Positions 13,258 to 41,229 of a stretch of DNA of 64,000 nt are shown piece by piece. The position numbers were made by a program, and so were the translations under genes. The stretch is taken from NCBI RefSeq assembly GCF_052425735.1, contig NC_135761.1, forward strand, positions 38,502,001-38,566,000. Reading direction: 5' to 3'. How positions within the stretch are numbered: the stretch's first letter is position 1; the number at the start of each line of letters is the position of its first letter. The notes under the pieces were generated by a model, which worked only from the letters and a program-made list of their open reading frames with translations, did no database searches and was not told the DNA's origin. The stretch comes from Oculina patagonica. Lineage: Eukaryota.

Positions 13258-16200
13258 ATGCCTCCAAAAAAGACTAAATCGAAGAAAACACCCGACAAAC
13301 CAAGTACATCGAGTATGCAAGCGACTACATCGAATTTGGAACGACTGCGAGTTATCCGTGAAGGACACCGACGACAAGTATCGAAACTGGATGAAGAATT
13401 AACCAAAATATTGCAAGGCGAAGACAAGGATTACGAACGGCTCAGTGTTATGAGACAACTCTTGGATGGAAAACAAGAGTCGCTAATCGAAATGGACCAA
13501 GAAATATTATCTGTATGCGAGGTTACAACGATTGATAAAGAAATCGAAGAGTCAGAAGAAATTACTGCCTCAATTATTCGTCTGAAGTGCAAAATCGAGA
13601 ATGCGAGCAAGGTAAACATGCCAAGTCAGCAACACGTGGGATCACCTCAAACGACTGCACAGCCAGTGAATCAAAATGCAGTCCGTACGAGATTACCGAA
13701 GTTGTATCTTCCGAAGTTTAAAGGAGATGTAACCAAGTGGAATACCTTCTGGGATTCGTTTCAATCGGCGGTACATCGTAACGAAGGGATTTCCAACATC
13801 GACAAGTTCAACTACCTCAATTCTGTCCTTGAAGGGGCCGCCGCTCGAGCTATCCAGGGTCTTACCTTAACCGAAGCAAACTACGACGCAGCAATCAAAT
13901 TATTACAAGAACGTTTCGGGCGTCCCCAACAAATTATCAGCGCACATATGGATCAGCTTCTCAAGGTTTCGCCGTGTTCTAATGATCGCCCAGCCAGCCT
14001 TCGATACGTCTACGATCAAATTTGTGTTCATTCCCGCGGTTTGGCGTCGCTCGGCGTAACTTCGGATCAATACGGAAGCCTCTTAATTCCTGTCATTATG
14101 TCTAAGTTGCCACCTGAGATCCGATTGCAGATAGCCAGGAACTCTAAGGATTCTGTGTGGAAAATTGAGGAGTTGCTAAACGTGATAAAGGTTGAAGTCG
14201 AAGCGCGGGAAGCAAGCGAGATGACCATGGCGAAAACAAGCGAAGGCGGAAAATCTCAATCGCCCGGCCGTGATTCAAAATTTCGAAATCAAACGCCAAC
14301 TGCGAATTCACTCGTCTCTCAGCAAGGTGGGAGCTTCAAAATCAAATGTGCCTATTGTCGAAACGAGCATTATTCTGCATCATGCGGCGTGGTACGAGAT
14401 ACAGCTCAACGAAGAAGTATTTTGGAACGAGATAAACGATGCTTCAATTGTTTGCGTTTTGATCACGAAACGAAGGAGTGCACGAATCCAAAAAAATGTC
14501 GACACTGCCAACAGCGGCATCATCAGTCGATTTGTTCCACGCTTGACCAAGGAAAACCGAAAGAAGTTTCAGCCGAAGAAATGAAGACAACGACAACAGT
14601 GAGCAACAAGGCAAAGGGAACTGTGCTCTTGCAAACAGCTAAAGCCGTGGCTGTCAACGATTTCAATTCTAAAACCGCACGTGTCAGAATTCTTCTGGAC
14701 ACTGGAAGTCAACGCACCTACGTCACAAACCGATTGAAATCAAGGCTTAATCTGTCCCCTGTGAAGTCAGAAACATTGCATCTTAACACTTTTGGAGACG
14801 AAAGATACACAAAGCAACAATGTGATGTCGTCAGCTTGCGGTTACAAGGATCTCAAGGAGAAATCGAAATATCTGCGCTATGTTTCCCAAAGATTTGCTC
14901 GGCGGTGTCAGCTAAAGTTAACATTGACAATCACACACATCTACAAGGTCTCGAGCTTGCTGACATCAGCATCGCTGAAACAGGTCAACAGGACATAGAT
15001 GTGCTAATTGGATCCGATTATTACTTCGATATTGTGTCTGGGGATGTCATTCGTGGCAGCAGTGGTCCTGTAGCAGTTAGCAGCATGTTCGGATGGGTCT
15101 TGTCTGGTCCCACAAGTGCTGAAGAATCAAGAGAGAAGTTTACAACTACAAATCTCATCATAGAGAGACCAGAATTGATGACCATGAGCCCATGTGACAT
15201 TCATAGTGAGAACGATGAGTTATGTAACGCCTTGCAGAAATTCTGGGACACTGAATCGTTAGGAGTACGAGAGGAACCACCTGCCTCACAGTCAGATGGT
15301 AAAGAGTTCCTGGAGAGCATTCATTTCGATGAGATGGAAGGAAGATACGAAGTAGGTCTGCCGTGGAAAGAAAGTCTTGTTCCTGCTTCAAACGAGTACG
15401 AATTGTGTGTTACAAGATTGAGACAGCTGCACTCGCGACTGAAGAAAAACAAGGAACTGTTAAAAGATTATGACAATGTGATCAAGGATCAAATCAATTC
15501 AGGGATTATCGAAGCCGTACCAGAACTTGACGACGACCAAGCTCCAATGCATTTCTTACCTCATCATGGCGTAATTCGCTCAGACCGGGAAACTACGAAA
15601 TTGAGAGTTGTATTTGATGGTTCAGCCAAGTCCGACAAGTCAACTGCCTCCATTAACGAGTGTTTAGAGAAAGGACCAAACTTAGTGCCACACCTATTTG
15701 ATATTGTGGTTAAGTTTCGAGGTTATCCATTTGCTGTAGTAGCTGACATCGAAAAGGCCTTCCATCAGATTCAGATCAACCCAGAAGACAGAAAAATGCT
15801 GAGGTTTCTATGGTTCGATGATATCGAGAAAGATTGTCCGCAAATCAAGCAATTCCAGTTTCGAAGGCTTGTGTTTGGCTTAACTCCAAGTCCAGCTATC
15901 CTGGCAAGTACCATAAAGCACCATCTGTCTAAGTACGAAGAAAAAGAACCGGAAGTAACATCTTTGTTAAGTTCAAGCCTCTACGTTGATGATCTGGCAG
16001 GAGGAGTGTTTCGCGAAAATGAAACTGTGAACTTGTACGACAAAGCACAGGAAATCATGAAAGATGGAGGATTCTCACTGCGTAAGTGGAATTCTAACTG
16101 TCAGTCATTCCGCGAGAAAATCAAGCGGGACGAAGAAAGAAAAGGCCAGTCAGTTATGGAAGCCCCTGCCGAAGAAAGCGAAACTGCACAAAATCTCAAG

Positions 16201-18750
16201 AGAGAAGAGTCAGCCAGTGCCAAAGATGTTAAACCGGAAACCGAACAATTTGTGAAGATACTCGGGATTTATTGGGATGTGATCCGAGACGAATTTCATC
16301 ATGACCTCTCTGAGCTAATCGAGTATGCAGAAGCCCTTCCAGCTACCAAACGATCTGTACTGAAACTGTCAGCTAAAATCTTTGATCCTATTGGACTGTT
16401 AACTCCGTTTACAATCAGCATGAAGGTCCTCTTCCAATGTCTATGTGTCGAGAAAGTCAACTGGGATGAGAGCTTGGAAGGAGAGGCTTTGGCAAAGTGG
16501 AAAACGTTCATTAATGACCTAAATGCTCTGAAGAACATCCGAGTTCCCCGATGTTATGCCAATTATTCACCGACGCAGTCAACCGTATGCTCATATCAGA
16601 TCCATGGATTTTCAGATGCGTCGGAAAGAGCCTATGCAGCAGTCGTGTACCTGAGAACCGAATTCAGCAATGGTGAAACACAAGTCAACATCATGACATC
16701 CAAGACGAGAGTAGCCCCAATCAAACGTCAGTCAATTCCCAGGTTGGAACTGCTAGGAGCTTCATTGCTAGCCCAGCTAGTTCATTCAACGCAGCAAACG
16801 ATACAATCCGTTCTCCCCATTGAAGGAACATTTCTATGGACTGATTCATTCACCACGCTGTGTTGGATCAAAAATGCTAAAGCATGGAAACCTTACGTAC
16901 AACACCGGGTCAGCAAAATACGAGAACTATCTAACGAAGCCAACTGGAACTTCTGTCCCGGAGAGTTGAACCCGGCTGATCTCCCATCACGAGGATGTGG
17001 AGGAGAGCAATTAGCACAAAACCAGTCATGGTGGAATGGGCCCAAGTTTCTGAGGTTATCAAGAGATCATTGGCCCAAGTCGCCTCAAACAAGTGCATTG
17101 TCTAAGAACAAAGATGCCCTTCAAGAAGTCGTAAAGAACCCCGTAAGTGTCACGCATTCTCTGGTCACGACAGAGTCGAAAGACCATTCAGTCAATCTCA
17201 GTCAAGTTATTGACATTGAACGATACAGCAGTGTAACACGATTATTACGCGTGACAGCCTACGTATTACGGTTCATACGTAATGCTAAGAAGAGTGTATC
17301 AAACCGTGAAACTCCCAAATCACCGGAACAGTCATCGAGAAAGGAACTTAATGCTCAAGAGTTAAATCAAGCTGAAATGCTGTGGATCAAGACTGTACAG
17401 ACAGCCTCATTTGCCAAAGAACTCGAATTTCTGCAAAGCAAAAGAGGAACATTCCCACCTGTCTACGTCACGCAATTTAACTTGTTCCTTAACGACCAAC
17501 AAATCATCAGATGTAAGGGAAGAGTAAGCAATGCACCGCTCTCTGAAGAAAGCAAGAATCCAATCTTACTTCCATCTAAGCACCCACTTACTAATCTCAT
17601 CATCCAGGATGTGCATTCCAAGATTAAACACAGTGGCATCAGGGATACCTTAACCACTATTCGAGAGAGATTCTGGGTACCAAGAGGTCGAGAAGCTGTG
17701 AAGAGAATTCTACGAAAGTGTGTCACCTGTAGAAGGGTAGAAGGGGCTCCATATAGACCACCACCGACTCCAGATTTACCAATGGAACGAGTGTCTCTGG
17801 ACCCGCCGTTTGCCCATACAGGATTAGACTTCATAGGACCGCTGTACATACACAATGGAAAGTCTTCAAAGGAAAAGGGCTCCGACAAAGTGTACATTTG
17901 CTTATTCACTTGTGCATCCACAAGAGCGATTCATTTGGAACTGACACCTTCTTTGAGTGTCGAATCATTTCTCTTAGCCTTTCGGAGGTTCGTAAATCGC
18001 CAGGGATTACCAGTCACCCTCCTGTCGGACAACGCCAAGACCTTCAGATCCGCATCCAAAGATATAAGGAAGATCATACAATCAGACGAGGTTATGCGAT
18101 ACTTAACTGACAATCGCATCACATGGAACTTTATCATTGAGCGAGCCCCTTGGTGGGGGGGTTTCTGGGAACGCATGGTTAAAGTTGTGAAGCAACCCTT
18201 AAAGAAAACAGTGGGACGCACTACATTGAACTACGATGAGTTACAAACCATAATGGTGGAGATCCAGGCAATCGTAAATGCTCGACCGTTAACATATGTC
18301 TATGATGATGAAGAGTCCATTTCAACTCCACTTACGCCCTCCCATCTAATTACTGGCAGACGAATTACCTATGAACCCAATAACCAGCATTTCCAAGTTG
18401 TTAGTGTCAACCAAACCTTGACAAAGCGAGCTAAACATCACCAACGACTGCTACAGCAGTTTACCAAAAGGTGGCAACACGAGTATCTTTTGAGTCTACG
18501 AGAACGTGCTAATGAGAGATGCAAGAAACAAAACAAGGAGAGCCCAATCTCAGTAGGTGACATAGTAATCGTAAAGTCTGATCTAAAGAAAAGAACATTT
18601 TGGAAACTGGGAAAGATTCAAGAACTGCTACCAGGCAGAGATGGGCAGATTCGATCAGCCAAAGTCAAAGTTGCTGGCAAGGGAGAGCGAAAGCCACAAG
18701 TATTACGTAGAGTGATACAGGACCTAATTCCTGTTGAAGTTTCTGAGTGA
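13258..18750 (+). CDS. BEL/Pao Gag-Pol polyprotein (DUF1759 gag, triple CCHC, aspartic protease, RT, Pao RNase H, integrase)
   Basis: LPKLYLPKFKGD..W..FWD; CAYC..H..C / CFNC...H...C / CRHC..HH..C; LLDTGSQ; YVDD; FSDASERAYA; H..H...CVTC; GLDFIGP / SDNAKTF / GGFWERM. First ATG at 13258 (MPPKK). Confidence 0.97.
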   Translation: MPPKKTKSKKTPDKPSTSSMQATTSNLERLRVIREGHRRQVSKLDEELTKILQGEDKDYERLSVMRQLLDGKQESLIEMDQEILSVCEVTTIDKEIEESEEITASIIRLKCKIENASKVNMPSQQHVGSPQTTAQPVNQNAVRTRLPKLYLPKFKGDVTKWNTFWDSFQSAVHRNEGISNIDKFNYLNSVLEGAAARAIQGLTLTEANYDAAIKLLQERFGRPQQIISAHMDQLLKVSPCSNDRPASLRYVYDQICVHSRGLASLGVTSDQYGSLLIPVIMSKLPPEIRLQIARNSKDSVWKIEELLNVIKVEVEAREASEMTMAKTSEGGKSQSPGRDSKFRNQTPTANSLVSQQGGSFKIKCAYCRNEHYSASCGVVRDTAQRRSILERDKRCFNCLRFDHETKECTNPKKCRHCQQRHHQSICSTLDQGKPKEVSAEEMKTTTTVSNKAKGTVLLQTAKAVAVNDFNSKTARVRILLDTGSQRTYVTNRLKSRLNLSPVKSETLHLNTFGDERYTKQQCDVVSLRLQGSQGEIEISALCFPKICSAVSAKVNIDNHTHLQGLELADISIAETGQQDIDVLIGSDYYFDIVSGDVIRGSSGPVAVSSMFGWVLSGPTSAEESREKFTTTNLIIERPELMTMSPCDIHSENDELCNALQKFWDTESLGVREEPPASQSDGKEFLESIHFDEMEGRYEVGLPWKESLVPASNEYELCVTRLRQLHSRLKKNKELLKDYDNVIKDQINSGIIEAVPELDDDQAPMHFLPHHGVIRSDRETTKLRVVFDGSAKSDKSTASINECLEKGPNLVPHLFDIVVKFRGYPFAVVADIEKAFHQIQINPEDRKMLRFLWFDDIEKDCPQIKQFQFRRLVFGLTPSPAILASTIKHHLSKYEEKEPEVTSLLSSSLYVDDLAGGVFRENETVNLYDKAQEIMKDGGFSLRKWNSNCQSFREKIKRDEERKGQSVMEAPAEESETAQNLKREESASAKDVKPETEQFVKILGIYWDVIRDEFHHDLSELIEYAEALPATKRSVLKLSAKIFDPIGLLTPFTISMKVLFQCLCVEKVNWDESLEGEALAKWKTFINDLNALKNIRVPRCYANYSPTQSTVCSYQIHGFSDASERAYAAVVYLRTEFSNGETQVNIMTSKTRVAPIKRQSIPRLELLGASLLAQLVHSTQQTIQSVLPIEGTFLWTDSFTTLCWIKNAKAWKPYVQHRVSKIRELSNEANWNFCPGELNPADLPSRGCGGEQLAQNQSWWNGPKFLRLSRDHWPKSPQTSALSKNKDALQEVVKNPVSVTHSLVTTESKDHSVNLSQVIDIERYSSVTRLLRVTAYVLRFIRNAKKSVSNRETPKSPEQSSRKELNAQELNQAEMLWIKTVQTASFAKELEFLQSKRGTFPPVYVTQFNLFLNDQQIIRCKGRVSNAPLSEESKNPILLPSKHPLTNLIIQDVHSKIKHSGIRDTLTTIRERFWVPRGREAVKRILRKCVTCRRVEGAPYRPPPTPDLPMERVSLDPPFAHTGLDFIGPLYIHNGKSSKEKGSDKVYICLFTCASTRAIHLELTPSLSVESFLLAFRRFVNRQGLPVTLLSDNAKTFRSASKDIRKIIQSDEVMRYLTDNRITWNFIIERAPWWGGFWERMVKVVKQPLKKTVGRTTLNYDELQTIMVEIQAIVNARPLTYVYDDEESISTPLTPSHLITGRRITYEPNNQHFQVVSVNQTLTKRAKHHQRLLQQFTKRWQHEYLLSLRERANERCKKQNKESPISVGDIVIVKSDLKKRTFWKLGKIQELLPGRDGQIRSAKVKVAGKGERKPQVLRRVIQDLIPVEVSE

Positions 18751-18950
18751 ACATTGAGCTTAAAACATGCAATGGAATTGTTTCATTTCAAACATTTGTT
18801 TGCGAACATTGGAGTGAAAACATGCAATGAAATTGTGTCATTTCGAACAGTGAACGAAAAAGTTGTGACATTTATCGAACTGTGGACTTTTGAGATTTAG
18901 ACTGTTGAGTGAAACGTTTTATCACTAAGTCGTGATGCAACCCCGGGGAG

Positions 18951-19085
18951 TGTTGTAAACAGTTTCATATAATTTATGTAAATTTATTAATGTAGTCAAA
19001 TTAGGCGATCACGTGGTTTATATATTGCACCATCTTGTAATATCGATTCGACGACGAATAAACATGTCTTGTTGTGTTCACTAAA
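18951..19085 (+). repeat. 3' LTR (135 bp), preceded by a short polypurine tract (ggggag)
   Basis: Identical to the 5' LTR. Confidence 0.97.
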
Positions 19086-21319
19086 GAATGTTTTAAAAGA
19101 AATAGTTGCAAAAACGCTAACAGTATTGTTTTTTTTTTCACAAAGCTTTTTGTTTGTAAGATATGGCGTTTGACATATATTAACATTTTTTAGAACATGT
19201 AAGTTGTTTATGAAAGCGGTATTAAAAAATTACGCCAGGACTTTAATCATTTTTACATCTTATTGCAAACTTGTTATAATAATTGTTTTTAATGACACCA
19301 AATATTGAAAACAGATTTCTAAGCTCCAATATATACCCACTGAGTCGCTCAAAGGACAAATTTTTTCTGTGAACTTTCAAATTAATTTTCTCAAAATCTG
19401 ATAGGAACATGTCTTTGGTGTTATTCACAGATTAACATTAGTTAATTTAAGTCGATTTCCTAAGCATGGTGATAATAACGTGTGTATCAGGCTTTCTGGA
19501 AGGTGTTCCAGGTTTTCAAGTAGGTGTTTCGGGGTGTTCTGTTTTTTTTTTTTATACTGTTCCGGGTGTTCCAGCTGTCAAAAGTATCACGTTATCTTTC
19601 GTTGAAGCGATTTTTAGTGCAGAATGCACTATTGTGATGGTTGTTTGGGGTTGTCGTCTACTGAACCCCTAATGCGCTATAGCATAAACGTTTAATCACC
19701 AATTAATTAATTTATATCAATTAATTAATTATTTCTGTGAAGGAGGTAGGGGTGGGGGCACCTGACAACCCCCAGGTAAAACCTGGAGCATATCTACGTT
19801 ACTTTCATATGAAGATCTCAGGTATATATATTTTTTTAGGAAACCCTTTGCTCTCCTTGTGGTGCTATACTCTTTCTGGGACAACGTACTTTGCCCAACC
19901 GCATGCACAGTATACAATATAGTCTACATTTTTTTGGAACTCTCAAGAACACCGCTTGTATTGCGTGTTTGTGGTAGGATTCCTGCAGACTCTGTGGCAC
20001 CAAGTGAAAACCGCAAATTAATTAAATTAGATTTTGAGACTTTCGCAGCGCTTTCGTAATAAGGAAAACTTGCACAGGGATTTTTGGCTTGATACCCCTG
20101 ATAAACAGGAACAAATATCCTAGCTGTACTGCATTTTAAAAAACCTCTCTTAAGAGATGTTTTTTGATAAGATTTGTTCCTTACTTTTGAGAAACGTCTT
20201 TCGTGCAGTTTATGCAGTAAATTAACTAAATTAAAGTCAAATAATTGGCTTTATTATTGAAAGGAAGACAAATGCTATCAATGTTTGCCGTGAAACAAAA
20301 CAAAAATGAACAAAAGTATCACGCTACAGCATACTCAAAGAAAACAGAAGTACCTTGTTACAAATGAACAAAGGTGTTGTGTTACGTTTGCAAAGATTAG
20401 CCTAATAAAAACCTGGGAAGAAATACAGGTGTTTTAACGTCTAATTAAAAGTAAACTAAAGCAAAAAACACGAACATAAGACGTAATACTTTCAATTGTC
20501 GACTCCATTGCATTCTGCACTGTCCTTCGAGTCTCTGAGTTCTTTCACAATTTCATGGGCTCGACAGAAATGCAAGACTCGTTGTAAGGAAGGCTCGGCA
20601 GCAATTTTGGAGGCGATCTTTGTGGATTTGAACAAGGTTTGGGCGAATTTGAGTCGAAAGAATGCAACGATGTAGGACGATTTTGTGGTTCGTTTTGAAG
20701 GTAGGAGAAGAATTTTCGATTTTTCTTATCTTTACGTAGTTTTGATGCAGCTCGCATTAATTTTTACCTGTTCTAGTGTTGATAAACTTTCATTGTGCCA
20801 AGTGTCAGCATGGTAGACAAGCTAGTTTTTTGGTAGACTTTTCCAGAAGTCGAGGTACTAATTGTGTCCGAAACCGCCATTCCACAACATTCGAGAGTAA
20901 CATGATCGACTCATGCTGTTTTGACCAGTTGTCAATCATTTGCGGAGTGTAATGGTCTTCTGTAATTTTTGTTTTATTTCTACATGTTCTATAGGTTCCT
21001 ACCGGCATGGAGAAGCACCTTGAAAGACTTCAGGCTCTTTGCCGAATTTGTGGACAGAAAATTATGGATGACAAGCGAAAAGTAATAGCATTGGGGAGGG
21101 GGTGAATAGAACAAACTTTGTAAATTTGTATTTTTATATAGTTTTAATGTGTAAGTAGTTAACGGATATAATAATATTGTTATTTCTATTTTACTTATTT
21201 TATTTTTATTTTTTAATATATATTTCACTTGTTTCTCGAAGAAACTAGCTTCTCTTAGCAATATTAAATTCGAGGATAAATAAAGTTTTATTTTTTTTAT
21301 GTATGTTATGTTATCAAGC

Positions 21320-26510: not shown

Positions 26511-28746
26511 AAGACTTGTTATTTTAAAATTTTAATTCAATTATGTGTTGTGTCATAATTGTCTCCTTTTTAACACCATAAGGAATTGGATCTCATGATC
26601 CGAGGGATCTCAGAAGGAAAATTGCAGAAGCCCGGTGCAGAAATTCAAGGGACCGTCTCTTACAACGAGCGAACGTTCCCTAAAGGTAAATTTATTTCAA
26701 AATGCAATCAAAAGTCTAAATAGAAATCACTTAAGTTTTCTACTTATATTTATACTTTCTTTCAGTAACCAAGATTAAGTGTTAAGTAAAGACGTTTCTC
26801 ACGAGATTAAACATTCTTCTCAAGAAAATTAAGGGACATGTCCTTTTTTGGGCCAATTATTTTCAAAATATCATTGAGCACCACCTTAAAACATCTGTGT
26901 TAAACATTTTTTTTTAAGCAGGCAGGTATTTATTAGGAAAGCAACAAAAGATTTATGCCAGGACTTTGTTAAACATCATATACTAGTACCTAGCAGTGAA
27001 ATGATGGCTGGGGGAGAGGGGGCATTAATTGAATTTCTTGAGCTTTTTGACATTTGCTTCCTTAAGTTTACTTCCAAAGTAATCATTTTCTTTTAAAATC
27101 CGTACATCTCCACTACAGGATTTGAAGAGTTCTTCTCACTTGCAACCATTAATTGCGTTTGTTTGTATTTTTAGCAGATGACACTGCCATAGAAGATCTA
27201 AGTGACAAATCAAAGTCCAGAAAAAGTGAGCTATTATCTTGTAGTAGCAGTGCAATTGCTTATCGAAGGTGGCTGAAACAAATCTAAATTCTTAGCGTTT
27301 TGGCTTTGCTTTAATTACAGGATTCCGATAGGCGGGTTTTTTAGCTTTAGCTAAAAAACAACTTTTGAGGTAAACTGATACTAATTAAGCCTCTCTTTTT
27401 TCTCCTGTAGTAAGATGTTTCAACTGCCGCGGAGAGGGGCATAAGGCCCGTAACTGCCCTTCTCCAAAAATAATAAGAAAAAATACCAAGAAGCCAAAGG
27501 AGCGAGTAGAAAGAATTGTCATAAATCACTACCATACGTATAAAGATAGGAGCTCGGCAAATTTTCATTGATCACGCGATTTTTTATTTCTTGTTTCCCT
27601 GTTTTATTTTTGTTTTTGAAGGAAAATAATTTGAAGCTGTCTTTTGCTTTCGAATGAAATTTTTTTGAAGTTGTCATGTCGCTTTTTATATTGGCTGAGC
27701 CTTTGTTGTTATTTGTAATTAAAACATCATTCTTAAACAATCGCGTGTTCTGTTTCTCGGTCACTAACCGGCATGTGGTGCTGTATGGGCTAAGTAACAG
27801 TATAAAGACTCCCTCTGCCCGCCCTTTTGCCTCCTACCCAGAGTCCCTACCAATGCTGGGGTCACGCTAACAGGAACTTTTTACCGTATTGTATTCTTTT
27901 TTAAGCCTCACCCACCCTATTGGAAACAAGTTTGTTCGATCTATTACCAAATCCTGGTCTAGAAAGACCTCACAGGGGTTTTCTAATCGAACAAAACTGT
28001 TAATTGGTTTCCAACAATAGAGAAATGTCTTGCTCGGCAAATTTTGGACAGATTTAAGAAAGATCAGGATTACAAAATGTTTCAAAACCTCAGACGGTGT
28101 ACACTTCTTTATCAAGAGCCTATCGTCCAAACTGAAGTGGCATTAACTGTCAAAATTCTTTATGTGCCATTGCATGTGATCACAGTGGAAGATACTCCTT
28201 GTGCATGTGATTGGTGTGAAAACGAGAAGAAGTATAAGCCCTTAGTGTTTAGATAAGCGTGAAATTTCAAGTTAGAATCCAGTTATTATTTTTCTTTTTT
28301 TTGTACTGCAGATAGTCATTTACCAGAAACGTAGCCACTCAGGGATGGGCAAGCTTCCAGGGCTTACCAGTATCAGCACAGGATGAATCTAATTAACCTG
28401 TTAGCCCACGTGCTAGAACTGGTAACCAGACAAGTAGGCAGGTCTTCAACTTCAATGTCGTGTTATTGGATTCCCGGAACCATTCCATCCCCAGGGGAAA
28501 TTTAAGGCAGCAGCCATGGAAGATCTGAGTGACAAATCAAAGTCCAGAAAAAGTGAGCTATTATCCTGTATTATAAAATGCTCCAGTTATTCCCAGCGCT
28601 ATGATTGGTCAATTTAAGTTCATTATAACTCCATAAAGCACTCTGCCTACGTCACGCACGTGCATTATAACTCAACATATGCACGCAAGCTACGTCATGG
28701 ATTTTTTTGCCGAGGAAAAAATTTGAGAACTAGCCTGTCCGCCATT

Positions 28747-29379
28747 ATGGCTGAACAATTTCCACGGTTTGAGATTGGGTTCGAATTCCTGAATACCAAA
28801 AAAAGTGACAGTGTTGAAGATTCCCCTAGTGAGGCACCTGTTGAAAAAAAGAAACGGTTTGCAGAACTAACTGAAGCGGAAAGAAACCGGCTTTTGGTGG
28901 AAACGCAAGAAAAAGCTAGGAAGAGCACGACAAATTGGGCTGTTAACGCTTTCAAAGGTAAAGAAACTCACAATAAATATAAGTTGAAGTGAACACGGAC
29001 TACAATATACATCCCAAACACTAAAACGTAAAACCGGTTTAATAAAGAAATAAAAAAATGACGAATAAAAGCATCTTACAGTTTTCCGTAAGAGAGTTTA
29101 CACCTGAGCTTGTTTACATTTTTGTCGACAGAAAAGCAACATTGCACTCGTTTATTCAATTAAATACATGTCTTCTGGCAGCTGTTGTGTATATCATTTC
29201 ACAGTCTTTTGAAATAATAATTAGTTAAAGACCGAGTTAAAACTATCTTTTTTTCTCAGAATGGAGTGCACAAAAAGTCCCTGTGCTGCCAAAACTAGAG
29301 GAGATGAGCGACGAACAACTTGACGACAGCTTGGCACAGTTTTATACAGAAGCACGAAGCAAAAAAGGAGAAGAGTACA
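28747..29379 (+). pseudogene. Crypton YR gene, 5' part (exon 28747-28957, intron 28958-29259, exon from 29260)
   Basis: MAEQFPRF...KRFAELTEAERNRLL...STTNWAVNAFK, then a GT..AG intron, then EWSAQK...LDDSLAQFYTEARSKKGEEY. Confidence 0.85.
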
Positions 29380-30343
29380 CTCACGTAAATTAAGGCATGG
29401 GTCATGACTAAAAAAATGCAAATTTTTAAACTGTTTATCCCTGCTTGGCAATGTAATAAAACAGTCTGTTCTGTTCCAGTAGTTTTGAAATGAAATGAAA
29501 CGTATGAAAAAGCGGTCATAAGTCTTAAATTTTGATTTGAATTATAGTGACTTTGCTACATTTCCAAGCGCAGAAATGAAGAAAATGCATTTCTTGGCAA
29601 GTTCTTCGCGTTAAAAACTTGCTGCAGTACACCTAAAGTGTTCCCATGTGGCCAAGTTTCTTCCTGCAAGGTTGTATACCGCCATTTTGAATTCATTATG
29701 CGGACCGCGTAATCGCCCCAGCATTTAGGTCTGGGTGCCAGCTTTTCTGTTGTCAAAGAGACGAACTGACCAATAGAATAAATGAATATGTAAAAGGCTT
29801 GGTTCCTTTTAATAAAATGGCGGACGAAGAAGCAAACTTCACGGCGATCTATGTACTTCTTTGCAAAATAATCAAAGGGTTGTTGACCGTTACTTTGTCA
29901 TGAAAAGATGTAGTTAAAACAATTATTTCTGCCACAAATAGAATCTTGTTAAAAAGGGGTATCTTCGTGTCTTCTAGATGTTTAAAGGTGAGAAATAAAT
30001 GCCTTCTTGATGTAAACAGGTTTGTTTTGTTTTTTTTGTTCCGAATTGTATTGCAAGCCATTGAGAGCCTTCTTTAGTTGTAATTTATGCCGGTTGGTGC
30101 TAGGCGCGTTATTTTGGCGCTAAAAACAAAATAAATTAAAACCATTGTCATGCTAATACAGCGAACAACAGCACTTCTGCAAAATAATCGTATGCACTTT
30201 ATAGAAAGATTGTAATTCTCCGAGGGTTTGCAAGAGGCTATTTCAAGTTAAGAGCGAGTTTAAGGTATATTAAGTATTATTTCAAGGAAATTATTCACAA
30301 AGCACTAATAACAAGAAAGCAAATTCAAGATTCGGCGCCTAAA

Positions 30344-33300
30344 ATGGCCTCCTACTTCGGATGTGGTTTTGCTCGAGTTGCAGCAAAATTAAGCTACCTG
30401 AAGCCCAATGGAAAGGTTGAGTATGATCAAGAACAGAGGTGCAGACAGTACTCGGGTATTTTTAAAGGAGAACACAAAAAACGCTTTGAAGTAGACCAAT
30501 ATTCGTTTAACAAGCGGTCCAAGAGTATTGTACTCCATTTTAAAAAATGGAAGACAGCCGAGAGGGAAAAATACATAGAGCACTTCAGTCCAAACAACTG
30601 GGAAAAGCTCACAGAACATGAAAAAAGGCAACATTGCCGTTCACAATGTAAAGCCTGTGATGTTCACCATTTCTCTATCCAATCTCTGTTTCCTTTGTGG
30701 GGAAACAAATCAAAGTCTGTTACAAATCAAAGTATTTACAAAAAAGTCAACAGCCGAGTCCTTAAAGAATCATCTGCTGTAAATGTGAAAGTAACAAAAA
30801 AGGCTATAAAAGCTGCCACAAAAGAAGTCTATGACAAAATTAACACTCCATTTGAAAAGACATTTGGCATAACTTTTGCTGTTGCTCAAACCAGTGTTCC
30901 TGAGCTAAATGTCCAGGTGAAAAAGTCGCATGCTGAGTTGAAACGAGAAAGGAGAAATAAATCCAGAGCTGACAAGAAGCACATCCAGAAGCAGTGGGCA
31001 ACAATGGATTGTGACACCATGCTTGGAACAAGGCAGACATACAGCCAACGTCAACAACAGCGGCTGTTACTTTCTTTTGAGACCAAACTTGATGCTGAGA
31101 ACAGGGCCAACAAAAGAGCACGCCTGGAAGAAGAAGGCCAGCGAAAAAAGAAAAGGCACTCTCCAAAGCCGGATCATCTTAACTTTGATAAGGATGGGCT
31201 CCTAGAAGAAGTAAATACAATGAAAGATGGAGAAATGGTTAGTAAACGTCAAGACAAATAATGTAGCCATACACCAAATACTCTATAATACATTGCTACT
31301 CCTCTTGAGTAACAATTCTCTAACTCCACTACATTTAATTCCTTTAAAATTAAAAAAAATCAACAAATGAATAATAAAATACAAATATTAAATTAACATA
31401 TACTGTACATTAGCTTCTCAATGTGTACCACTCCCAGACAACATAAACTGGTTGCTTAATTAACCAGTGATAAAACATAGCACTTATGTGAATAACATTT
31501 TCCTTTTCAGATTAATTTCTCTAATCTTGCTCGTAAATATGGCCTGATGGAAAAAAACAAAAAATGGAAATATGGTCGTCAAAGAGTTTCTAGAAAACAA
31601 GGGGGTGCAGTTGTCTAGATTTAACCACTTCAGAAGCGTTAAGCCAGCAGCCAGGAGAAAATTAAGACGAATGCAGGGTGGAGAGATTTCAGTCCCAGTC
31701 CAACAAACAAACAGTGAGATCAGAGAAACCTTAATGGTAAGTCAGGGAGAATTAAATAAAAAAATGAATGAATGGAAACGTTATTAAAATGTATTGATAC
31801 TTTCCTGTACAAATAAGTTGTAAACATACTAGGTAATATAAAATAAGCAAACAAAACAAGAAAGAATTTCAATCCTCACTAGAAAATATGGTACAGTAGC
31901 TGAAAAAATGCAAACTGATTTGTATATGCCTATCGATTTGTTATTTTTGTAGAGCAAAATTGAAAGTGGCGAGTACATTCTTGGTGAAATGATTGTTCCC
32001 CAAACAGTCAAGAAAGTCACCTTGACAAAAGAGGGAAAAATAAAGAAAGAAACATTTACAGTAACAGGCCGCAAGATTCCTCTTCTTGACATCAGAAAAA
32101 ATATGCTGAAAGAGCATGAGGAAATGGGTTTGATGCGAATAAGAAGTGATAGCGACTATGACTTCATGACAGAAGATGAAATCAGTTCCAGACTTAAGCA
32201 GTTGGGTGAGGATGAAGAGGAAGAAAGTGCATCCAATAGGAAAGAAAAACTGAAAGAAATTGAAAGAAAAAGGCACCTTATGGTCTGTAGTGACAATGCA
32301 ACTCTTCTAAATCATGGCCACATCCTACTCACAGTCAATGCTGTTTATGATGAGGCCCTTTACTTCACCAATGAAGAAATGAAAGGCATGGGTCAAGAGA
32401 ACGTTGATGTTGATGCTGGATGTGCAAGCTGCAGTGGAGATTCCAGAAAGTACAAACATCTTGCAGTTTCCCTCAACAGACCACACTTGAGCCTCCAAGA
32501 GCGCAAAAAGAAAGTTCTGCAAGGTCCTGCAGGTCGACAGAAAAGAAATGGTGGCATAAAACCCTTTAAAGACCTTCTTTTAGAGGAGCTGAAGAGGGAG
32601 TGCTCTGCCCGTGGACTACCTTGTGATGGTCAGAAGGATGAGCTGCAAGAGGTTCTCAAGGAAGAGCTTGTGGGATTCAACGAGTGCCTGTGATGATCTT
32701 CTTTGATCAATCAAAACATATGGCAGATCTTGGTTTAGGTAAGAATAGTGAATAGTGACCACATTATTTTCACAGGTGTGTATACACATGTATGTGTATA
32801 AATTAAATTACATGTAAGTTTCATGCAAGGCATATACAGACATTCTCATCAAACTAGGCAGGATCCTGAGAACAAAGATCAGCCTTTTATATACTTTAAG
32901 GAAAGAAGGACTATCAGAAATTTAAGTATTCATTTGTTAGTTGTTTTTTTTTTTTTCTTCACAAACTCTCAGCACAAATCATACACTGTCAACTATGAAC
33001 ACCTTGTTTTAATGAACACAAATGGTACATTTTCCCTGTTTTGTTTTGTGTGAAAAAAATTGACCAGGCTGGGTATAAAAATCATTGTTATCATCTTACA
33101 CAAAAATTAGTTTGACCTTACCACTCCTGCCGATTTTTTTTTACTCATGAGAGAAAAAAGTGAGAGAAACTAAGACTGTCAGCTAGACAGGGTGGTTAAA
33201 CACAATCTTATGCATTATATTTTAAACAGGAAATTATGAAGTCCTACCCACAGAGCCCCTCCATGACATAAAAGAACACATTGCCAATGTCCTGACAGAG

Positions 33301-35253
33301 TTGCCTTGTCACCTTGAAAAGGAAGAAAAGAAAGCACTTGAAGAAATCATAGAATATTCGTTGGGTGGAAAGGAGAAGAAAAGAGGTTGTGATTACAGAC
33401 TTGCAGCTGTTATAGTGGCTCAGTATTTAAGAGGTAAGAATCGTGTGCACACTGAGTCTCATAACATATAATACAGCTGTATTTACTTAATCCAGATCTG
33501 AAACATGAAATGGATGTTTCACTGAATTCCTACTTACATGTACATTACCCTGTTTATGAAACAACTGTTAACTCAATGTAACCTTGTTTATAATTACAAT
33601 GTAATAAGCTGTAATAGTAACAGTCTAATCATAACGCCAGTGTATTTAGAACTGTACAAGCAATATTTTAGCCTTGCAATGCTATTTAGCTATTCAAAAT
33701 TCACTGTTCTCTGCCTCTTCTTTGTAGGAAAAGTAAGACCTTTGGTACAGTTACTCCTGGATTCCCTGACAGAGCTAAGTAAACTTCTGTACATGCCAGC
33801 ACATTCAAGATGCCCCAAATTAGTTCTCCGCCTGCACAATCAAGCCTTCATACATGCCATGACCTGCAAGGAAATCTTTGGCGAGCCAAAAATTCTCACT
33901 GAGAGAAAATTTTATGGCAGATACTGGCATTCCCTTACTGCACATGCTGCGAAGCAAAGCAGAATTGTCTCTTTGAAGTCAACAAATACTGAAGAAGAAG
34001 AGAGACATTTTAATACACTTCAAGGTGTGACCAAGTTAACCAACAGGCGGCCAGGAGACATAATCACACCAAGTCTCATCCGCCTGCAGGCTGAGCAAAA
34101 GCTTGCAGAGAGCAAGCATGCAACCAGCAATCCAGTGAAAATGCAGGAATCAAAAATTTCCAAATACTACAATACCCTTCCACCACTCCCAAGCACAGTT
34201 ATTCCAAACCGATATATCATCAAACACCCGAAAGAATATCAGGCTCACCTGCAGGGTATCAGTGACTTTATTGCTTGTGGGGAAGGTGTATGGTGGCAGC
34301 AGATTTTGTCTGGAGTTGAATTCTTTGATGGTCCTAATGAAGCTAACAGCAGACCTCAGGGACCATTACTTCATCATTTCAGATCAAGCAACCTCCAGTT
34401 AGAGGAAGAGTACCTACAAGAGTGTTGGGATATGTGTCTAATTGATGAAAATATAACAATTCCTCACAGCATAATAAGAATCTACAACCAGAGGGGTGAC
34501 TGCACCAGAGTCACACGCACAAACTTCTTGTACAGATATGATGACAGTGATGAAGAACTAGGCAATGAAGTAGCTGAAGATGCTGAAACAGAATCTCTTG
34601 TAGTAGATGATGATGAAGATGCAGCAGAAGAGGTAACATTATTGGAAGAAGTTATCACTCCTGAGTTCAAAGATTTTTCTGGTGAGTACAGTGATGATGA
34701 AAATGATGAAGAAGAACTGCAACCTTTGTTCACATCACCATCTTTGTCTGCAGTAGCAAATAACAGTACATTAAAGAATTCTGAGCAAGACAAAAGTAGC
34801 ACTGATAATTCAAGTAGAAGACCAATTCAAAATTCAGCAACAAGCCAGCAAAGCAGAAAATCACTTTCAGATAACAGACCTAGCTCAGACAACTCACAAA
34901 GAAAAGAAATTCAAACAAAGCTGTGTAAAAATATAGCCAAAATAGTTGGCGAAACAGAAAATGTTTACAAATTGGACACTGCAAGACAAAACATGAAGCA
35001 ACATCCAACAAGCACCTTTCACACAAACAACTTCCAGAACCTTCTTGCACCAATGCAGACACAAATCCTGGCTCATCACACATCATTGAAGAAACAGCAC
35101 AAGGAATGGGAAAAGCAATACTTCCTTTAAAATGACTGCACTGAAGCGAGCTTAGAAGACCTTAAAACAGACAACGAGCAGTACTCAATATACAAAAAGT
35201 TAGTTTTGTGTGAAGAACTCTTCAAGCACTGGAAAATAACTGTCCATCTGTGA
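30344..35253 (+). pseudogene. Five-exon putative DDE transposase (RAG1/Transib/CMC-like core with SAP-like insertion and acidic tail), lightly decayed
   Basis: Exons 30344-31237, 31511-31736, 31953-32738, 33230-33433 and 33728-35253, all GT..AG and phase-compatible. Motifs: HCRSQCKAC, LMVCSDNATLLNHGH, GCASC, EELKRECSARGL..GQKDELQEVL, EPLHDIKEH, YWHSLTAH, NTEEEERHFN. Lesions: +1 frameshift near 31560, -1 frameshift near 32672, stop at 35128-35130, likely internal deletion near 32410. Confidence 0.75.
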
Positions 35254-35450
35254 TATCAGTGTGCGGTGTTGGTATGTTAGTTATAAAGCCAAGTAGTAAA
35301 TGCATCTCTTCATTATTCTTTCTTTAATAAGGCCTATGTACCCAAGATGCACATGAGAAAAACTGCTCAAGTTATGAAATCCAACAATTCAATTCTTCTG
35401 TTATAAATCATTCATCACTTTCCTTTCTTCTGTTATATGTAAATATATAC

Positions 35451-35763
35451 TAGTTATGCAACGCTTTCGAGTGGTATACTATGGAATATCCCACGAGTCA
35501 CTTGTATTTTCTCGGTATACACACGAGCCTTTAGGCGAGTGTGTATGCCAAGAAAATACAAGTGACAAGTGGGATATTCCATAGTATACCACGAGAAAGT
35601 GTTGTGTAACTATTTTATACCATGCCATAGAAAATACGCTTACTAAATTTCGTCAAGAATACAGTCGCAGCGCACTATGGGAAGGTTGGGTTGAATACCG
35701 TCAAATATACAACGGCTTTCCTGTATTCTGATTGGCTGCATTTTCTATGGCATGGTATAAAAT
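35451..35763. mobile_element. Double-hairpin palindromic non-autonomous element (Crypton-like MITE)
   Basis: Hairpin 1 at 35451-35612 (gtggtatactatggaatatcccac...gtgggatattccatagtataccac). Hairpin 2 at 35612-35763 (ttttataccatgccatagaaaat...attttctatggcatggtataaaa). Confidence 0.8.
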
Positions 35764-36357
35764 TACTTATAGGAAGTAAGTAAATAAAATGAACAGTTTA
35801 CTGCATGCTATTTACTCTAGCAGCCAGAAGAAAGAAAGAAGCATTTAGTAAAGCTTATATTCTCCTATAAATACCAGAAAGAAAAGGCCAAGTTAGTTAG
35901 GAGAACATTGAAGAAAATCAGTTTTGTTTCGAATTTGCATGCTTCGTGTATCCTTCTTACTCCCAGAGCAGAAACTGCTTTTCCGCTATTTTTACACAGA
36001 AAATCAGAACTTAAAGCCTACAAAGGCTTTAAATTATTGTTACTAACCTTACCTCAGTGAACTGAGTAAAAATAAACATATTTGTAAAGGCAAATGTTGA
36101 CAATCAAGCACTTTGTTTCTTCGTGTTTTCATTCGAAATCATTATAGTGACTGCCGGCTCTAGTAGTCGTTTCCACGGTTTCCACGTCCGTTTCCACAGA
36201 AACCAAAATTAAACCGCTGAAAAAGGCGATCGGCTCCCAAAGACGTTCTCTTTATTTGGCTTTCAAGACCTTATTTGGCACGAGATGCTTTTCCCGCCAA
36301 GACAAAAATTTGATGGTTGAAGGAGGGAAAGCTAAAATAATCAATATCAATTATAGC

Positions 36358-37582
36358 ATGGGTAAATTCAGAGATCATACTGTTGAGGAAATTCGTAGGC
36401 TTCGGAATGCGAGGCAGAAACGAAAGCGTCAACAAAGAACAGCACAAAGACTAGCCCTCGAACGAGCGCAGATTATGAAAGAGCGTGAACAGGAACGACG
36501 GATTGCTTCAGAACTACGAGAAACAGCGCGCAAATTTTGCAGAAAGTGGCGTGAAAAATGCCACGAAAATAATAAAATGAGACATCTCTTAGATCAATAT
36601 CGACTTCAGGTAAGGTTTTTAGCTTCTAGAGATATGCACCTTTCATACCAAAAATATTTCACCGAGTTGCAAATAGGTACCTGAATAACAGAAGTCACTG
36701 CACACACATCTACTTTAAAAACATATTTTAATGACAGTAAGCTTGCTTTGTAACATCAAGGCGTCCATCAATACATTTTAAAGTAATTGTTATTGTGTGA
36801 AACCTTTTTAACAGGGGCAAATCAATAAGCAAGGGGTTGCTGTGGAAAATAAAGTTAATAACATTAGTTTAAGAGAGCTTAGCACTAATGTTCAGCCATG
36901 CATCTCACTTGGAGAAGGTTCCTTTGGGAAGTGTTAATTGAAAAACTACAAGAGGATGGGTATTACTGTGGTCGAGAAACAAATGATCAATGGTTACATG
37001 CATGACATTATCAAAGAAGCACAAACAATGCAAGCTTTGGTGCACCCCAATATACCAACAATTCTTGATGTGCAAATTGAAGAAGAACCATATGCCATCA
37101 TCATGGAGTACTTAGGTGAGGCAAATTCCTCTTTCACAGTCCATGATCTCCTCAAAGAGACCAACAGCCTGGAGAAAAAGGACTGGGTCAAGATTTCTTA
37201 TAATGTTGCTGATGCCCTAAATCATGTACACAAAAAAGGTTTTCTTCATTGTGATTTGAAGGCTAATAATGTTGTTGTCTTCAAAAAGGAAGGGTTCTTG
37301 ATTGACTTCGGAAAAGCTTGTGCAATCACATCTCCACCAGCAAAAAAATACAAGTTCTCTTATCCCCATATTGCACCTGAAGTACTGAATGGTTCTCCGT
37401 GCAGTGTAAAAAGCGACATTTACTCGCTAGGAACAGTTCTGAAAAAAATTGGCTTGTCCCAGAATATTCAATGCATAACAGAGGTGGCCCAGACATGCCT
37501 AAATGACAGTCCAAAGCAGCGGCCAACACTAGTGGGAATACTAGCATCCCTTGTTTCACAAAATGATTTTCAATTAAATTAA
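36358..37582 (+). pseudogene. Two-exon Ser/Thr protein kinase (non-RD, HCD) with a basic coiled-coil N-terminus; transposon cargo; one in-frame stop
   Basis: Exon 1 36358-36609, intron to 36814, exon 2 from 36815. Motifs LGEGSFGKC, VVEK, IIKEA, HCDLKANN, DFG, IAPE, SDIYSLG. TAA at 36935-36937. Confidence 0.88.
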
Positions 37583-37914
37583 TACACTGCAGCTTTGTAA
37601 ACCAGCAAAACATTTTATTGACAATTATCAGAGTTGAAAACCCAAGTGTCACTCTCATTCCAGTGTAGAACTTTAGGTATTTTCTGAAAAACAAGATAGT
37701 ATTCAAGTTACCACAAAGAGCAATTACACGACTCTGATAATACCAATAGCAATGACAAACAATCTACTTCTATTGTTCTTTTTTAGGCAAAATGTGTAAT
37801 TCTTGTCAAATTATTCCACAATGTTTATTGCTTATCACACTATTTAACAATAATTTAGAAAAGAACTGATTTAGCTCCCAAATGGAAATTTAGTGCTTTC
37901 ATTGTTTAGAACTC

Positions 37915-38880
37915 TCCTCCCAATGATCACTTTCCTTTAATCTCACTACCTGCAGAAATATATGAAGACAGTCTGTGATAGAAAAAAAAAAAGATTTAAC
38001 ATTGAGTTAATGGCTTTAAGGTGGCTATGGTGGAGCTCTCCTGTTGTCAAGATGATTCGTCTTTTAACAACAGGCTGTCTGGATGTTTCGTCCTCTGGTA
38101 GTGTGCAAAACCTGCAGCCATTAATACATTTAGCTCATGACATGACATTTCCCATAAAAATCAATACAAAGTCTGCAGATCTTGAGAAAAAAGGAATTGA
38201 TAACCCCAAAAAGAGAAAATGTGTTGATAAATTATCGCCAAAAATATTCCTATTTGAAGTTATAAGACATTGAGTCCATATAGTCACAAATGGTAATTTT
38301 TTTTAAACGAATGACATCTTATAACTGAATAACAAGGTAGATCAGTTGTCAGCCAGTGAAACATTGATCAGCAGGAAGGGAATTTTTTAAGACATGACAG
38401 ATTAATATGGTGTTAGTGTGGTATTTTCTGAAAAATAAAAATTATATATATATATTAAGTCAATGGTAGTTCACTTCAAAACATGCAGAGTATGAATTTT
38501 CTTAGTGGAACCTTTGGAAGTTCTCAAAACCTTTCCCATTGATCACATTCCTTTAATCTCACAAACAGTAGATTTAGACATTTTTATTGAAAAAAAGAAG
38601 AAAAAAAGGCTTACTTCAAAAGACTGATTGCAAGGTGGCAAAGGTGGAGCTCTCCTGTTGTCAAGATGATTCGTCTTTTAACAACAGGCTGTCTGGATGT
38701 TTCGTCCTCTGGCAGTGTGCAAAACCTGCAGCCATTAATTTATTTGGCCCTCAAAATGATCTGCATGTTATGTTTCCCCCAAAGATCAATACAGAGTCTG
38801 AAGATATTGAGAATAAAGGAATTGGTCATAAAAAAAATGTGTTGATAAACTGTTATTAAAAATACTCTGTTATGAGACAT
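37915..38880. repeat. Imperfect local duplication (~615-bp spacing) inside the TIR element
   Basis: ggtggagctctcctgttgtcaagatgattcg...gcaaaacctgcagccattaat occurs at ~38029 and ~38643. Confidence 0.85.
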
Positions 38881-39758
38881 GTAGACAGAAGTCTACATCA
38901 CCAATATAGATCCAGTACAAAATTTGTCTAACGGATAACTAGGTAATGAGGACAACAGAATTGATCACCACAAAAATGGGGAAGCTGTGTTAATTAAGAA
39001 CAAATTTTAAATTTACATGTACTACTTTGGCCGTAAACAATCAATGAACTCTCGCAAAACAAGTTTCAAATCAGAAAATATAGAAATTAAATGAGCACAT
39101 CAATTGGAGTGTACAGCATAGAATGAAGAGTGTAATACATACACTGTAGTTGAATATATAGAGATATAATTGAGAGTAGGAAATACAGTATATCAGCTCT
39201 TGTAGTTATATGTGATAAATCAGCTTAGCCTTGCAGCCATTTCAAAAATAAAGAAAGATCAGAAAATTCTGTTTTGGTTTAAAAATTGTCCGAAGCTTAT
39301 TCGCCATCGCTTACATATGCTTTTATCGAGTAGATATCATCAGTTTATATATCGACTACCAAATAACTTTAAAAAGAAAGAGATAAGGAGTTTCAAACGC
39401 AAGCTGCCGAAGACTTTATAATTAAGCTTAATAGCTTTATACAAGGTTTATAGATCATATTTGAAAAATAACTTACCTTTATCACGTAACGCCATAACAG
39501 GGATTTCTACCAGTTAATCATCAAACGTAACAGATGCTCTTACTACATAACGCTTCTTATCCCTCCAGAATCGAATTCTGCATAAACAACGAACTGGATG
39601 AATTTGAAAAACATTGCTCGCATCGACCGCCATGTTTTTTCATTTTGATCTCGATCGGTCAACTCTCCCCAGGGTCTACTCGGCATAAAAATCCAAGATG
39701 GCGGCACCTTCGTAACCTGGCCAAAACAAAACTTGGCCCATGCCTTAATTTTCTTGAG

Positions 39759-40786
39759 CAGTAAATCGTCTCTAATTTCGTTCAGAAATGCAATAGAGAG
39801 GCATTTGAACAACCCACCTTACAAGAGAAGTTTGAAGCTGAATTCAGCTTCATTTTCAAGTTCCAACCGTATGCTGAACGCCAAAATCAAGAGCCTGAAA
39901 CTGCAAGGGAAGGAAAATGTGCAGCACAAAGAAGCCATCCCTATTGACGACTTGAAGAAATTGAAAGCTGGTCCTGTTTTGCGCCTTACAAATCCATGGT
40001 CTTTGCTGAGAAACGTGTGGTTTCATGTTGTCCTGTACTGGTGTAGGAGAGGTCGAGAGGGGCAGAGAAGTTTGAAGCCGACGAGTTTTGAATTTGCAGT
40101 GGATGAGCAAGGCAGGCGCTATGTCACTATGACCCACGACGAGACCAGCAAAAACCACCCTGGTGGACTTCAAGACCATTCCAGCTTCGAGAAGACGGCT
40201 CGTATGGACAAAACAGAGAGTTAGACCGACGGCTATCGAGCGCTGAGCTTGTACATCTCCAAGCTAAATCCGAAATGCGAAGCTCTTTTTCAGCAACCTC
40301 GGCGCGATTGGAAGGAATCCGCCACACACGACGTATAGTATGAATGGCGTCAACACCCTCGGAAACATGATGAAAGAAATCAGTACGGCAGCCAAGCTTT
40401 CCAAAGTTTACACAAACGACTGTGTTCGGGCGACAGCGATAACCTTGTGGTCAGAAGCCGGTTTGTCGGATCGACACATATGCCACATTTTGGGCCACAG
40501 AAACCCGAACAGTCTCCAGCATTATAATTCCCGCCCGTCGTCTACCCAGCTCAGAAAATGCAGTGATGTTTTGTCCAGTGCATTACAAGACGACAACCAG
40601 AAGTCTTCACGAAGTGATAATCCTGTTAGTGAGCTCCAAACAGCAGTGCCAGGCACAGTGGTGGAAACACACAACCGATTGTCCACCACTGCGATTCACA
40701 GCAAAATGCTTGGCGGCATGTTTAATTCTTGCACCGTCGGTTCGGTTCAAATTAATTTTTATCCGCCTGAACGCAAAAATCAGTGA
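39759..40786 (+). pseudogene. Crypton tyrosine recombinase (DUF3504-like), 3' part
   Basis: SKSSLISFRNAIERHL...WCRRGREGQRSLK...SKNHPGG...GVNTLGNMMKEIS...YTNDCVRAT...GHRNPNSLQHY. The R-K-(H)xxR-H-Y catalytic set is present, with H mutated to D. Stop at 40222 and a frameshift. Confidence 0.9.
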
Positions 40787-41031: not shown

Positions 41032-41229
41032 TAAAAGAAATAAAAAAAACTTGCTCCTCGTGCATTGTTGAGTTATATGAGCACTCGGGAATTTTAAGAA
41101 CACTCGAGAAGTGCGAGAAGCACTCGGCTGCGCCTCGTGCTTCTCTATGCACTTCTCTCGTGTTCTTAAATATTCCCGCGTGCTTATATAACTCAACAAT
41201 GCCATCGGGCGCATTTTTTATTTCTTTAG
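41032..41229. repeat. ~200-bp imperfect palindrome at the Crypton 3' end
   Basis: aaagaaataaaaaa...cattgttgagttata...[cggctgcgcc]...tataactcaacaatg...ttttttatttcttta. Confidence 0.9.

Follow-up and report, generated by a model that had tools for sequence, protein, structure and literature searches.

What kind of gene lies, in pieces, at 30344-35253 of a 64,000-nucleotide stretch of the Oculina patagonica genome (contig NC_135761.1, positions 38,502,001 to 38,566,000; hereafter the window)? Its motifs recall those of the recombinase RAG1, and its exons are broken. We find that it lies within a 10.4-kb element (29380-39758) bounded by terminal inverted repeats (TIRs). Very probably, the gene is a decayed copy that once encoded the transposase of a cut-and-paste DNA transposon of autonomous type; the intact enzyme would belong to the DDE transposases of the CMCT clade (EnSpm-Mirage-Chapaev-Transib-Plavaka).

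The gene, its lesions and the element around it

The exons were defined by three-frame translation and by tblastn with P0113, a full-length homologue from amphioxus. The four open reading frames (ORFs) of the original prediction are present, at 30344-31261 (305 amino acids), 31572-31787 (71 amino acids), 31989-32693 (234 amino acids) and 33538-35130 (530 amino acids). The additional exon proposed at 33230-33433 is real, being homologous to residues 663-731 of P0113, and consensus splice sites occur at each of the four GT-AG introns. In the ancestral frame these introns have phases 0, 0, 1 and 1, and each has a pyrimidine tract and AG. The related copies align with the window at the nucleotide level in the exon blocks only (73-82% identity) and not in the introns, which supports the exon model. 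However, the ORFs do not join as cleanly as had been supposed, since exon 2, which begins at 31511, is in a different frame and contains an additional A, exon 3 contains a frameshift, and the stop at 35128 comes early. The features of the gene are as follows.

30344..31237, + strand: exon 1, transposase N-terminal region; 33% identity over 296 amino acids to the N-terminus of Branchiostoma P0113; donor atg/GTTAGT
31238-31510, + strand: intron 1, GTTAGT..CAG
31511..31736, + strand: exon 2, broken by +1 A; from the alignment with related copies L001 and L003
31737-31952, + strand: intron 2, GTAAGT..TAG
31953..32738, + strand: exon 3, with the first catalytic Asp, a 216-bp deletion, the ZnC2 motif, the SAP domain and a 1-nt deletion; from protein and nucleotide alignments, Pfam SAP and tblastn with P0113
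32283-32294, + strand: VCSD in exon 3, first catalytic Asp (WHD/WGD in relatives)
32418-32432, + strand: GCASC in exon 3, ZnC2 motif
32574-32669, + strand: SAP domain, Pfam PF02037, 25.4 bits against a cut-off of 23.9, expectation value (E) 1.1e-5
32739-33229, + strand: intron 3, GTAAGA..CAG
33230..33433, + strand: exon 4, EP[L/M]HD motif followed by helices; homology to P0113, splice sites CAG/ and /GTAAGA, phase 1
33253-33267, + strand: EPLHD in exon 4
33434-33727, + strand: intron 4, GTAAGA..TAG
33728..35253, + strand: exon 5, with the ZnH2 motif, the catalytic-Glu motif, a conserved C-terminal domain and an acidic tail; from homologue searches, alignments and tblastn
33922-33945, + strand: YWHSLTAH in exon 5, ZnH2 motif, including HSLTAH
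33985-34011, + strand: NTEEEERHF in exon 5, catalytic-Glu motif
34240-34269 and 34372-34389, + strand: C-terminal domain motifs QAHL..ISDF and HHFRSS in exon 5, together with WW

Exon 1 bears the conserved motifs CGF[AG]R and HFSxxxWxxL..CxxC and has no Pfam match. The order of the motifs downstream is the one originally predicted, running from VCSD through GCASC, the SAP-like helix pair (now placed above the Pfam cut-off), EPLHD and HxxxxH to the Glu, and the last Glu does stand 19 residues past the second His.

The lesions were mapped against L001, L002 and L003, three related copies in coral assemblies, to which the window sequence was aligned at the nucleotide level. In exon 2, an A has been gained in the A-run at 31551-31557, where L001 and L003 have one A fewer, and the frame shifts from INFSNLARKYGLMEK.. 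to ..NGNMVVKEFLENKG. Exon 3 carries an in-frame deletion of 216 bp at about 32405-32413, a position at which each of the three relatives has 216-219 extra bases. The 72 deleted codons, which in L001 extend from ..EKPHVYILGRC.. to ..FHGDGP..GEQKGGN and include the invariant Asp of GD.P, take with them beta-strand 4 and the second catalytic Asp (FHGDGP), as had been suspected from a junction near 32410. Further along exon 3, a 1-nt deletion at 32669/32670 places its last 22 codons in another frame. A premature TAA at 35128-35130 ends the 530-amino-acid ORF at a codon that relatives read as CAA, GAC or AGC, and the natural stop follows at 35251-35253. Finally, the WHD or WGD that surrounds the first Asp in relatives has been altered to CSD. 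Owing to the loss of 72 codons with the second Asp, two frameshifts, the premature stop and the change from WHD to CSD, the window copy cannot make the enzyme. Judged from its sequence, it is dead, without any function itself. This is what was first concluded, with the two 1-nt frameshifts and the stop at 35128 overlooked at that time.

The gene is flanked by the ends of the element:

29378..29379, no strand: target-site duplication, left copy (CA); CA at both element ends, and the reading frame of the flanks is regained on removal
29380..29404, + strand: left TIR, 25 nt, 5'-CTCACGTAAATTAAGGCATGGG..; 88% complementary to 39734-39758, same terminus in L001, L002 and L003
39734..39758, - strand: right TIR, 25 nt; pairs with the left TIR, terminus common to related copies
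39759..39760, no strand: target-site duplication, right copy (CA); matches the left CA

The terminus CTCAGGAAAATTAAGGCATGGG also bounds related copies, and the ends of the window element, L001, L002 and L003 conform to 5'-CTCA(G/C/A)G..C(C/T)TGAG-3'. A 2-bp target duplication accompanies three independent insertions: CA in the window, TA in L001 and CA in L003. In silico excision of the element together with one CA fuses the flanks into a single reading frame, ..GEEY followed by SKSSLISFRNAIERHL.., and an interrupted ORF spanning 28660-29379 and 39759-40786 reads through. Its Pfam matches are weak, to QRICH1 (E 0.017) and to Phage_integrase (C-terminal part; E 3e-4, below the cut-off). They would fit a Crypton-like host element, into which the transposon would have inserted with the creation of the 2-bp duplication. 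Nested inverted repeats at 41062-41202, 3' of this ORF, have 34-nt arms that are 91% complementary and 73 nt apart, with an inner 22-nt pair that is also 91% complementary; they may be a small foldback element. The DNA of the window is AT-rich (GC content 0.34-0.45), and its nearest protein matches are from corals and other cnidarians.

The family and the predicted fold of an intact member

Exon 5 as a query returned 96 proteins with E values down to 4.5e-214, and an exhaustive search returned 1549 clusters at 50% identity (E <= 1e-3). Single clusters hold tens to hundreds of sequences, with a maximum of 217. Named members come from Branchiostoma, Argopecten, Nematostella, Ptychodera, Hydra, Hydractinia, Mytilus and Paramuricea, to which the AlphaFold DB neighbours add Crassostrea, so that the hosts comprise cnidarians, molluscs, a hemichordate and amphioxus. 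All named members are 'uncharacterized' or misnamed. The name 'AP-5 complex subunit zeta-1', given in public records to P0113 (Branchiostoma belcheri KAI8516476.1) and to the AlphaFold DB entry A0A8B6E4I5, seems to be an annotation error passed between records, or else the product of fusing the gene model with that of a neighbouring gene. Where the window copy has its acidic tail, the homologue P0087 has, at residues ~440-650, a long array of tandem repeats rich in Ser, Thr and Pro (units like PTHVSLTPCTSGTSAQT). The tail following the catalytic domains is thus highly variable.

The motifs themselves are strongly conserved. Residues were counted among 242 homologues. The first catalytic Asp is present in 28/29 and the second in 43/43, and the two Glu residues in 217/223 and 222/224. 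The zinc-motif positions show similar constancy (Cys, 44/45 and 46/46; HxxxxH, 218/220 and 216/223). The His of [L/M]H is kept in 79/79 and the Glu of EP[L/M]HD in 76/76. An alignment of 17 diverse members shows no variation at W146, D148, D244, C262, C265, E379, P380, H382, H508, H513, E529 and E532 (P0148 numbering). Accordingly, the D, CxxC, LH, HxxxxH and E residues are near-invariant among homologues.

When pieces of the window and 19 homologues were scanned against Pfam (E <= 10), SAP was the sole match. The SAP model (PF02037) matches 5 of 23 aligned rows, with a best E of 2.5e-7, and the family profile aligns among PDB sequences to the SAP structures 1zrj (E 0.08) and 2kvu (E 1.3). Neither the Chapaev model nor a RAG1-type zinc finger at the N-terminus was matched in Pfam scans of the full-length proteins P0113, P0117 and P0159. 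When a set of 5.8 billion proteins was searched with a profile for Pfam-annotated distant relatives, only 74 close members were found, none of them with a Pfam domain.

An AlphaFold2 model of an intact member (P0148, residues 1-780) was built from alignment A1, with a mean predicted local distance difference test (pLDDT) score of 80 and a predicted template-modelling score of 0.81. It contains an RNase H-type core, with strands at 140-148, 157-165 and 195-201, a helix at 206-223 and a strand at 233-243. D148 lies at the end of strand 1, D244 past strand 4, and E529/E532 open the helix 529-544. In a Foldseek search of the PDB, RAG1 chains filled the first 43 places (best E 9e-9, over about 600 columns). 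BbRAGL was at rank 44, and HzTransib and the P element transposase followed. With VIA-align, RAG1 gave a Z-score of 16.4 over 435 residues, placing model residues 20-571 on RAG1 482-1004. The scores for the others were 13.6 for BbRAGL, 13.3 for HzTransib, 9.6 for the P element transposase, 8.2 for ISCth4 and 6.2 for Hermes. The fold comparison therefore came out in favor of the RNase H fold and the RAG1/Transib/CMC architecture proposed originally.

The spacing of the motifs points in the same direction. The second Asp and the CxxC are 18 residues apart in the family and 19 in RAG1, and the second His and the last Glu are 19 and 20 apart, respectively. The distance from CxxC to [L/M]H is 117 residues as against 65 in RAG1, which is due to the SAP-bearing insertion of ~52 extra residues. 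We take the RAG1 equivalents to be D600 for D148, D708 for D244, C727-C730 for C262-C265, H937-H942 for H508-H513 and E962 for E532, an assignment that fits the aligned ranges. In the model, the CxxC 18 residues after the second Asp and the HxxxxH 16-19 residues before the Glu pair are thus predicted to occupy the zinc-ligand positions C727, C730, H937 and H942 of RAG1.

Past the catalytic helix, the family has an extra C-terminal domain of ~130 residues (P0148 ~573-700, corresponding to the 34240-34480 region of the window), marked by QAHLERISDF, WW and HHFRSS, in which W624, W625, D636 and W666 are invariant. Folded alone as residues 545-712 (pLDDT 80), this domain had no meaningful match in the PDB or the ESM Atlas (template-modelling (TM) score <= 0.33, E >= 0.66). 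The ESM Atlas neighbors of the model, as judged by language-model features and shape, were clusters of Transposase_21 (EnSpm), DUF1258 (Mirage), Plavaka and RAG1. Of these, EnSpm and Plavaka align as far as residues 743-777, through the C-terminal domain, whereas the RAG1 row ends at 549. This weakly suggests that the family stands on the CMC side.

We propose that the intact enzyme would bind the CTCAGG.. ends, perhaps aided by the SAP module and the N-terminal region, and that the SAP helix pair, inserted between CxxC and EP[L/M]H, may contact the DNA. Cutting would proceed at the DDE site by a two-metal-ion mechanism, in a protein that presumably has, like RAG1, a C2H2 zinc site with a structural role, and integration would occur with a 2-bp stagger. 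By analogy with RAG and Transib, hairpin formation on the flanking DNA is plausible.

Placement among RAG1, Transib and the CMC transposases

The motif architecture of the CMCT clade has already been published (PMC12730594, after Yuan & Wessler 2011). In that work, the order D/D/CxxC/HxxxxH/E is a signature of the whole clade. It is therefore no special tie to RAG1. The DDE triad on an RNase H-like fold is found in the P0148 model, with the second Asp deleted in the window copy. The Cys pair is present as the invariant C262/C265 (GCASC in the window) and the His pair as H508-x4-H513 (HSLTAH in the window), and the 2-bp target duplication falls within the 2-5 bp of the clade. For the CMC transposases, a range of 2-4 bp is given (bioRxiv 10.64898/2026.08.26.747230).

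Among solved structures, the likeness is greatest to the RAG1 core, BbRAGL (ProtoRAG) and HzTransib (4wwx, 6cg0, 6xnz, 6b40, 6pqn). The match is one of multi-domain fold, from the region preceding the RNase H domain to the end of the core, and it includes the order D, D, CxxC, [L/M]H, HxxxxH, E with near-identical Asp-Cys and His-Glu spacings. However, sequence identity is ~10%, without a match at the level of hidden Markov models. The family also differs from these proteins in its SAP-bearing insertion and C-terminal domain, in a 2-bp instead of a 5-bp duplication, in CTCAGG instead of CACxxTG termini, and in having no RAG2-like partner. Its N-terminus is unlike that of RAG1, with no Pfam match to the RAG1 N-terminal or RING models. 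Thus, of the features of Transib/RAG1-like elements, the likeness of the catalytic core is found, while the 5-bp duplication, the CAC-heptamer termini and a sequence match to RAG1 models or to RAG1 and Transib chains are absent.

Mirage elements make 2-bp target duplications, as this family does. Clusters of DUF1258 (PF06869), which corresponds to Mirage (PMC3985635), are among the nearest ESM Atlas neighbors, and the CMCT motif set is held in common. Conversely, PF06869 does not match the family, the family occurs in cnidarians, molluscs and deuterostome invertebrates whereas Mirage is found mainly in nematodes, and a SAP insertion is not reported for Mirage in the literature searched. EnSpm/CACTA (Transposase_21, DUF4218) and Plavaka (PF18759, DUF6830) align over 470-530 residues in the ESM Atlas, including the region past the catalytic Glu, and exon 5 gave weak feature-level leads to DUF4218 and DUF6830 clusters. 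Both differ from the family in the lack of a Pfam match, in termini that are CACTA or CAC, and in a duplication of 3 bp rather than 2 bp. Chapaev/Chapaev3 (DUF1280) belongs to the CMCT clade and shares the host range of the family, since its hosts include lancelet and sea anemone (PMC4411706). However, PF06918 does not match, and the N-terminus of the family is not Cys-rich, unlike the Chapa zinc-finger N-terminus of Chapaev.

Several results weigh against placing the gene in the CMCT clade. The termini are CTCAGG..CCTGAG and not the 5'-CA..TG-3' found in most cases. The models for Mirage (PF06869), EnSpm (PF02992), Chapaev (PF06918), Plavaka (PF18759) and RAG1 have no match in 19 members at E <= 10. 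Sequence searches of PDB chains, with exon 5 and with the family profile, returned SAP domains alone and no transposase, RAG1 or Transib. The TM-scores of the structural matches are moderate, at 0.4-0.54, and the residue-level equivalence with RAG1, as predicted from the model, rests on motif spacing and aligned ranges. No CMC-type transposase structure was among the PDB matches found; as none has been solved, RAG1 as the top PDB match does not show nearest kinship. The transposase activity of family members is predicted.

The rank of RAG1 and BbRAGL ahead of HzTransib, together with the presence of the family in amphioxus and a hemichordate, would suit a place for the family within the Transib/RAG-like lineage, directly related to the ancestor of RAG1, and not on a CMC-side branch. 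We consider this unlikely. All three insertions show duplications of 2 bp instead of 5 bp, no CAC heptamer is present at the termini, the element has no RAG2-like ORF, and no Pfam RAG1 domain is matched. In addition, the EnSpm and Plavaka alignments continue well past the end of the RAG1 row, and the higher Z-score of RAG1 over Transib can stem from chain length (435 versus 380 aligned residues). There is still less to recommend placing the enzyme in a different insertion-bearing DDE superfamily (P, hAT, Kolobok or MULE), with Cys/His motifs that arose by convergence. The P element transposase and Hermes do align with the model, but their matches are clearly weaker than those of RAG1 and Transib and cover fewer residues, and the duplication is 2 bp as against 7-8 or 8 bp. 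A C/DxxH motif is typical of hAT, P and MULE, whereas the positions and spacings of CxxC and HxxxxH fit RAG1.

It is also very improbable that the locus is the pseudogene of a domesticated, transposase-derived host gene rather than a transposon copy, even though it is a multi-exon gene with consensus splice sites and members are annotated as ordinary LOC genes in some genomes. The gene is flanked by 25-nt inverted repeats and a 2-bp duplication, and a host ORF is regained on removal of the element. The same termini occur on related copies at unrelated sites, clusters contain tens to hundreds of members (up to 217), and the copies examined carry independent lesions. Hence, we retain the reading of a decayed CMCT transposase gene. 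Because no named lineage is matched in Pfam and the termini are not CA..TG, we file the family as a distinct branch of the known clade. It is a distinct lineage that is unannotated in Pfam, and Repbase may list it already as an EnSpm or Mirage element. Only tentatively do we suggest that it is an undescribed CMCT lineage at the superfamily or deep-family level, characterized by the SAP insertion, the extra C-terminal domain, CTCAGG termini and 2-bp YA duplications, with capture of a protein kinase gene by some copies in this coral.

The rest of the element and the meaning of the family

The remaining part of the element forms one further feature.

35254..39733, + strand: element interior 3' of the transposase, with a palindrome, a coiled-coil ORF and a kinase ORF

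The ORF at 36256-36684 encodes a basic coiled coil. That at 36938-37582 encodes a protein kinase (Pfam Pkinase, E 1.5e-30) covering profile positions 31-190 only, and the first part of the kinase N-lobe is missing or lies in another exon. Nothing equivalent to the segment 35254-39733 is present in the related elements L001-L004, and no kinase was found beside related transposase genes in four other contigs. Just 3' of the transposase stop, a near-perfect palindrome at 35444-35619, with 87-nt arms that are 85% complementary and 2 nt apart, looks like a miniature inverted-repeat transposable element or a foldback insertion. A second inverted pair, perfect over 24 nt, joins 35612-35635 and 35740-35763. 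In L004, the region 15423-20943 beside a related transposase fragment contains reverse-transcriptase ORFs (RVT_1, zf-RVT) and a 961-amino-acid PIF1-helicase ORF, which belong to other mobile elements; the region is rich in repeats.

The link between the CMC transposases and Transib/RAG1 rests on a few shared motifs. A large, well-conserved animal lineage with a confident AlphaFold model, in which about 435 residues superpose on RAG1, offers a tractable comparison in tracing how the core of the V(D)J recombinase arose. Since no Pfam model covers the members, which go unannotated or misnamed, gene counts of invertebrates are inflated by them. If an intact copy were active, it might serve as a new transposon tool. 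If the family is indeed an undescribed lineage, it would offer an independent outgroup for reconstructing the origin of the RAG1/Transib core.

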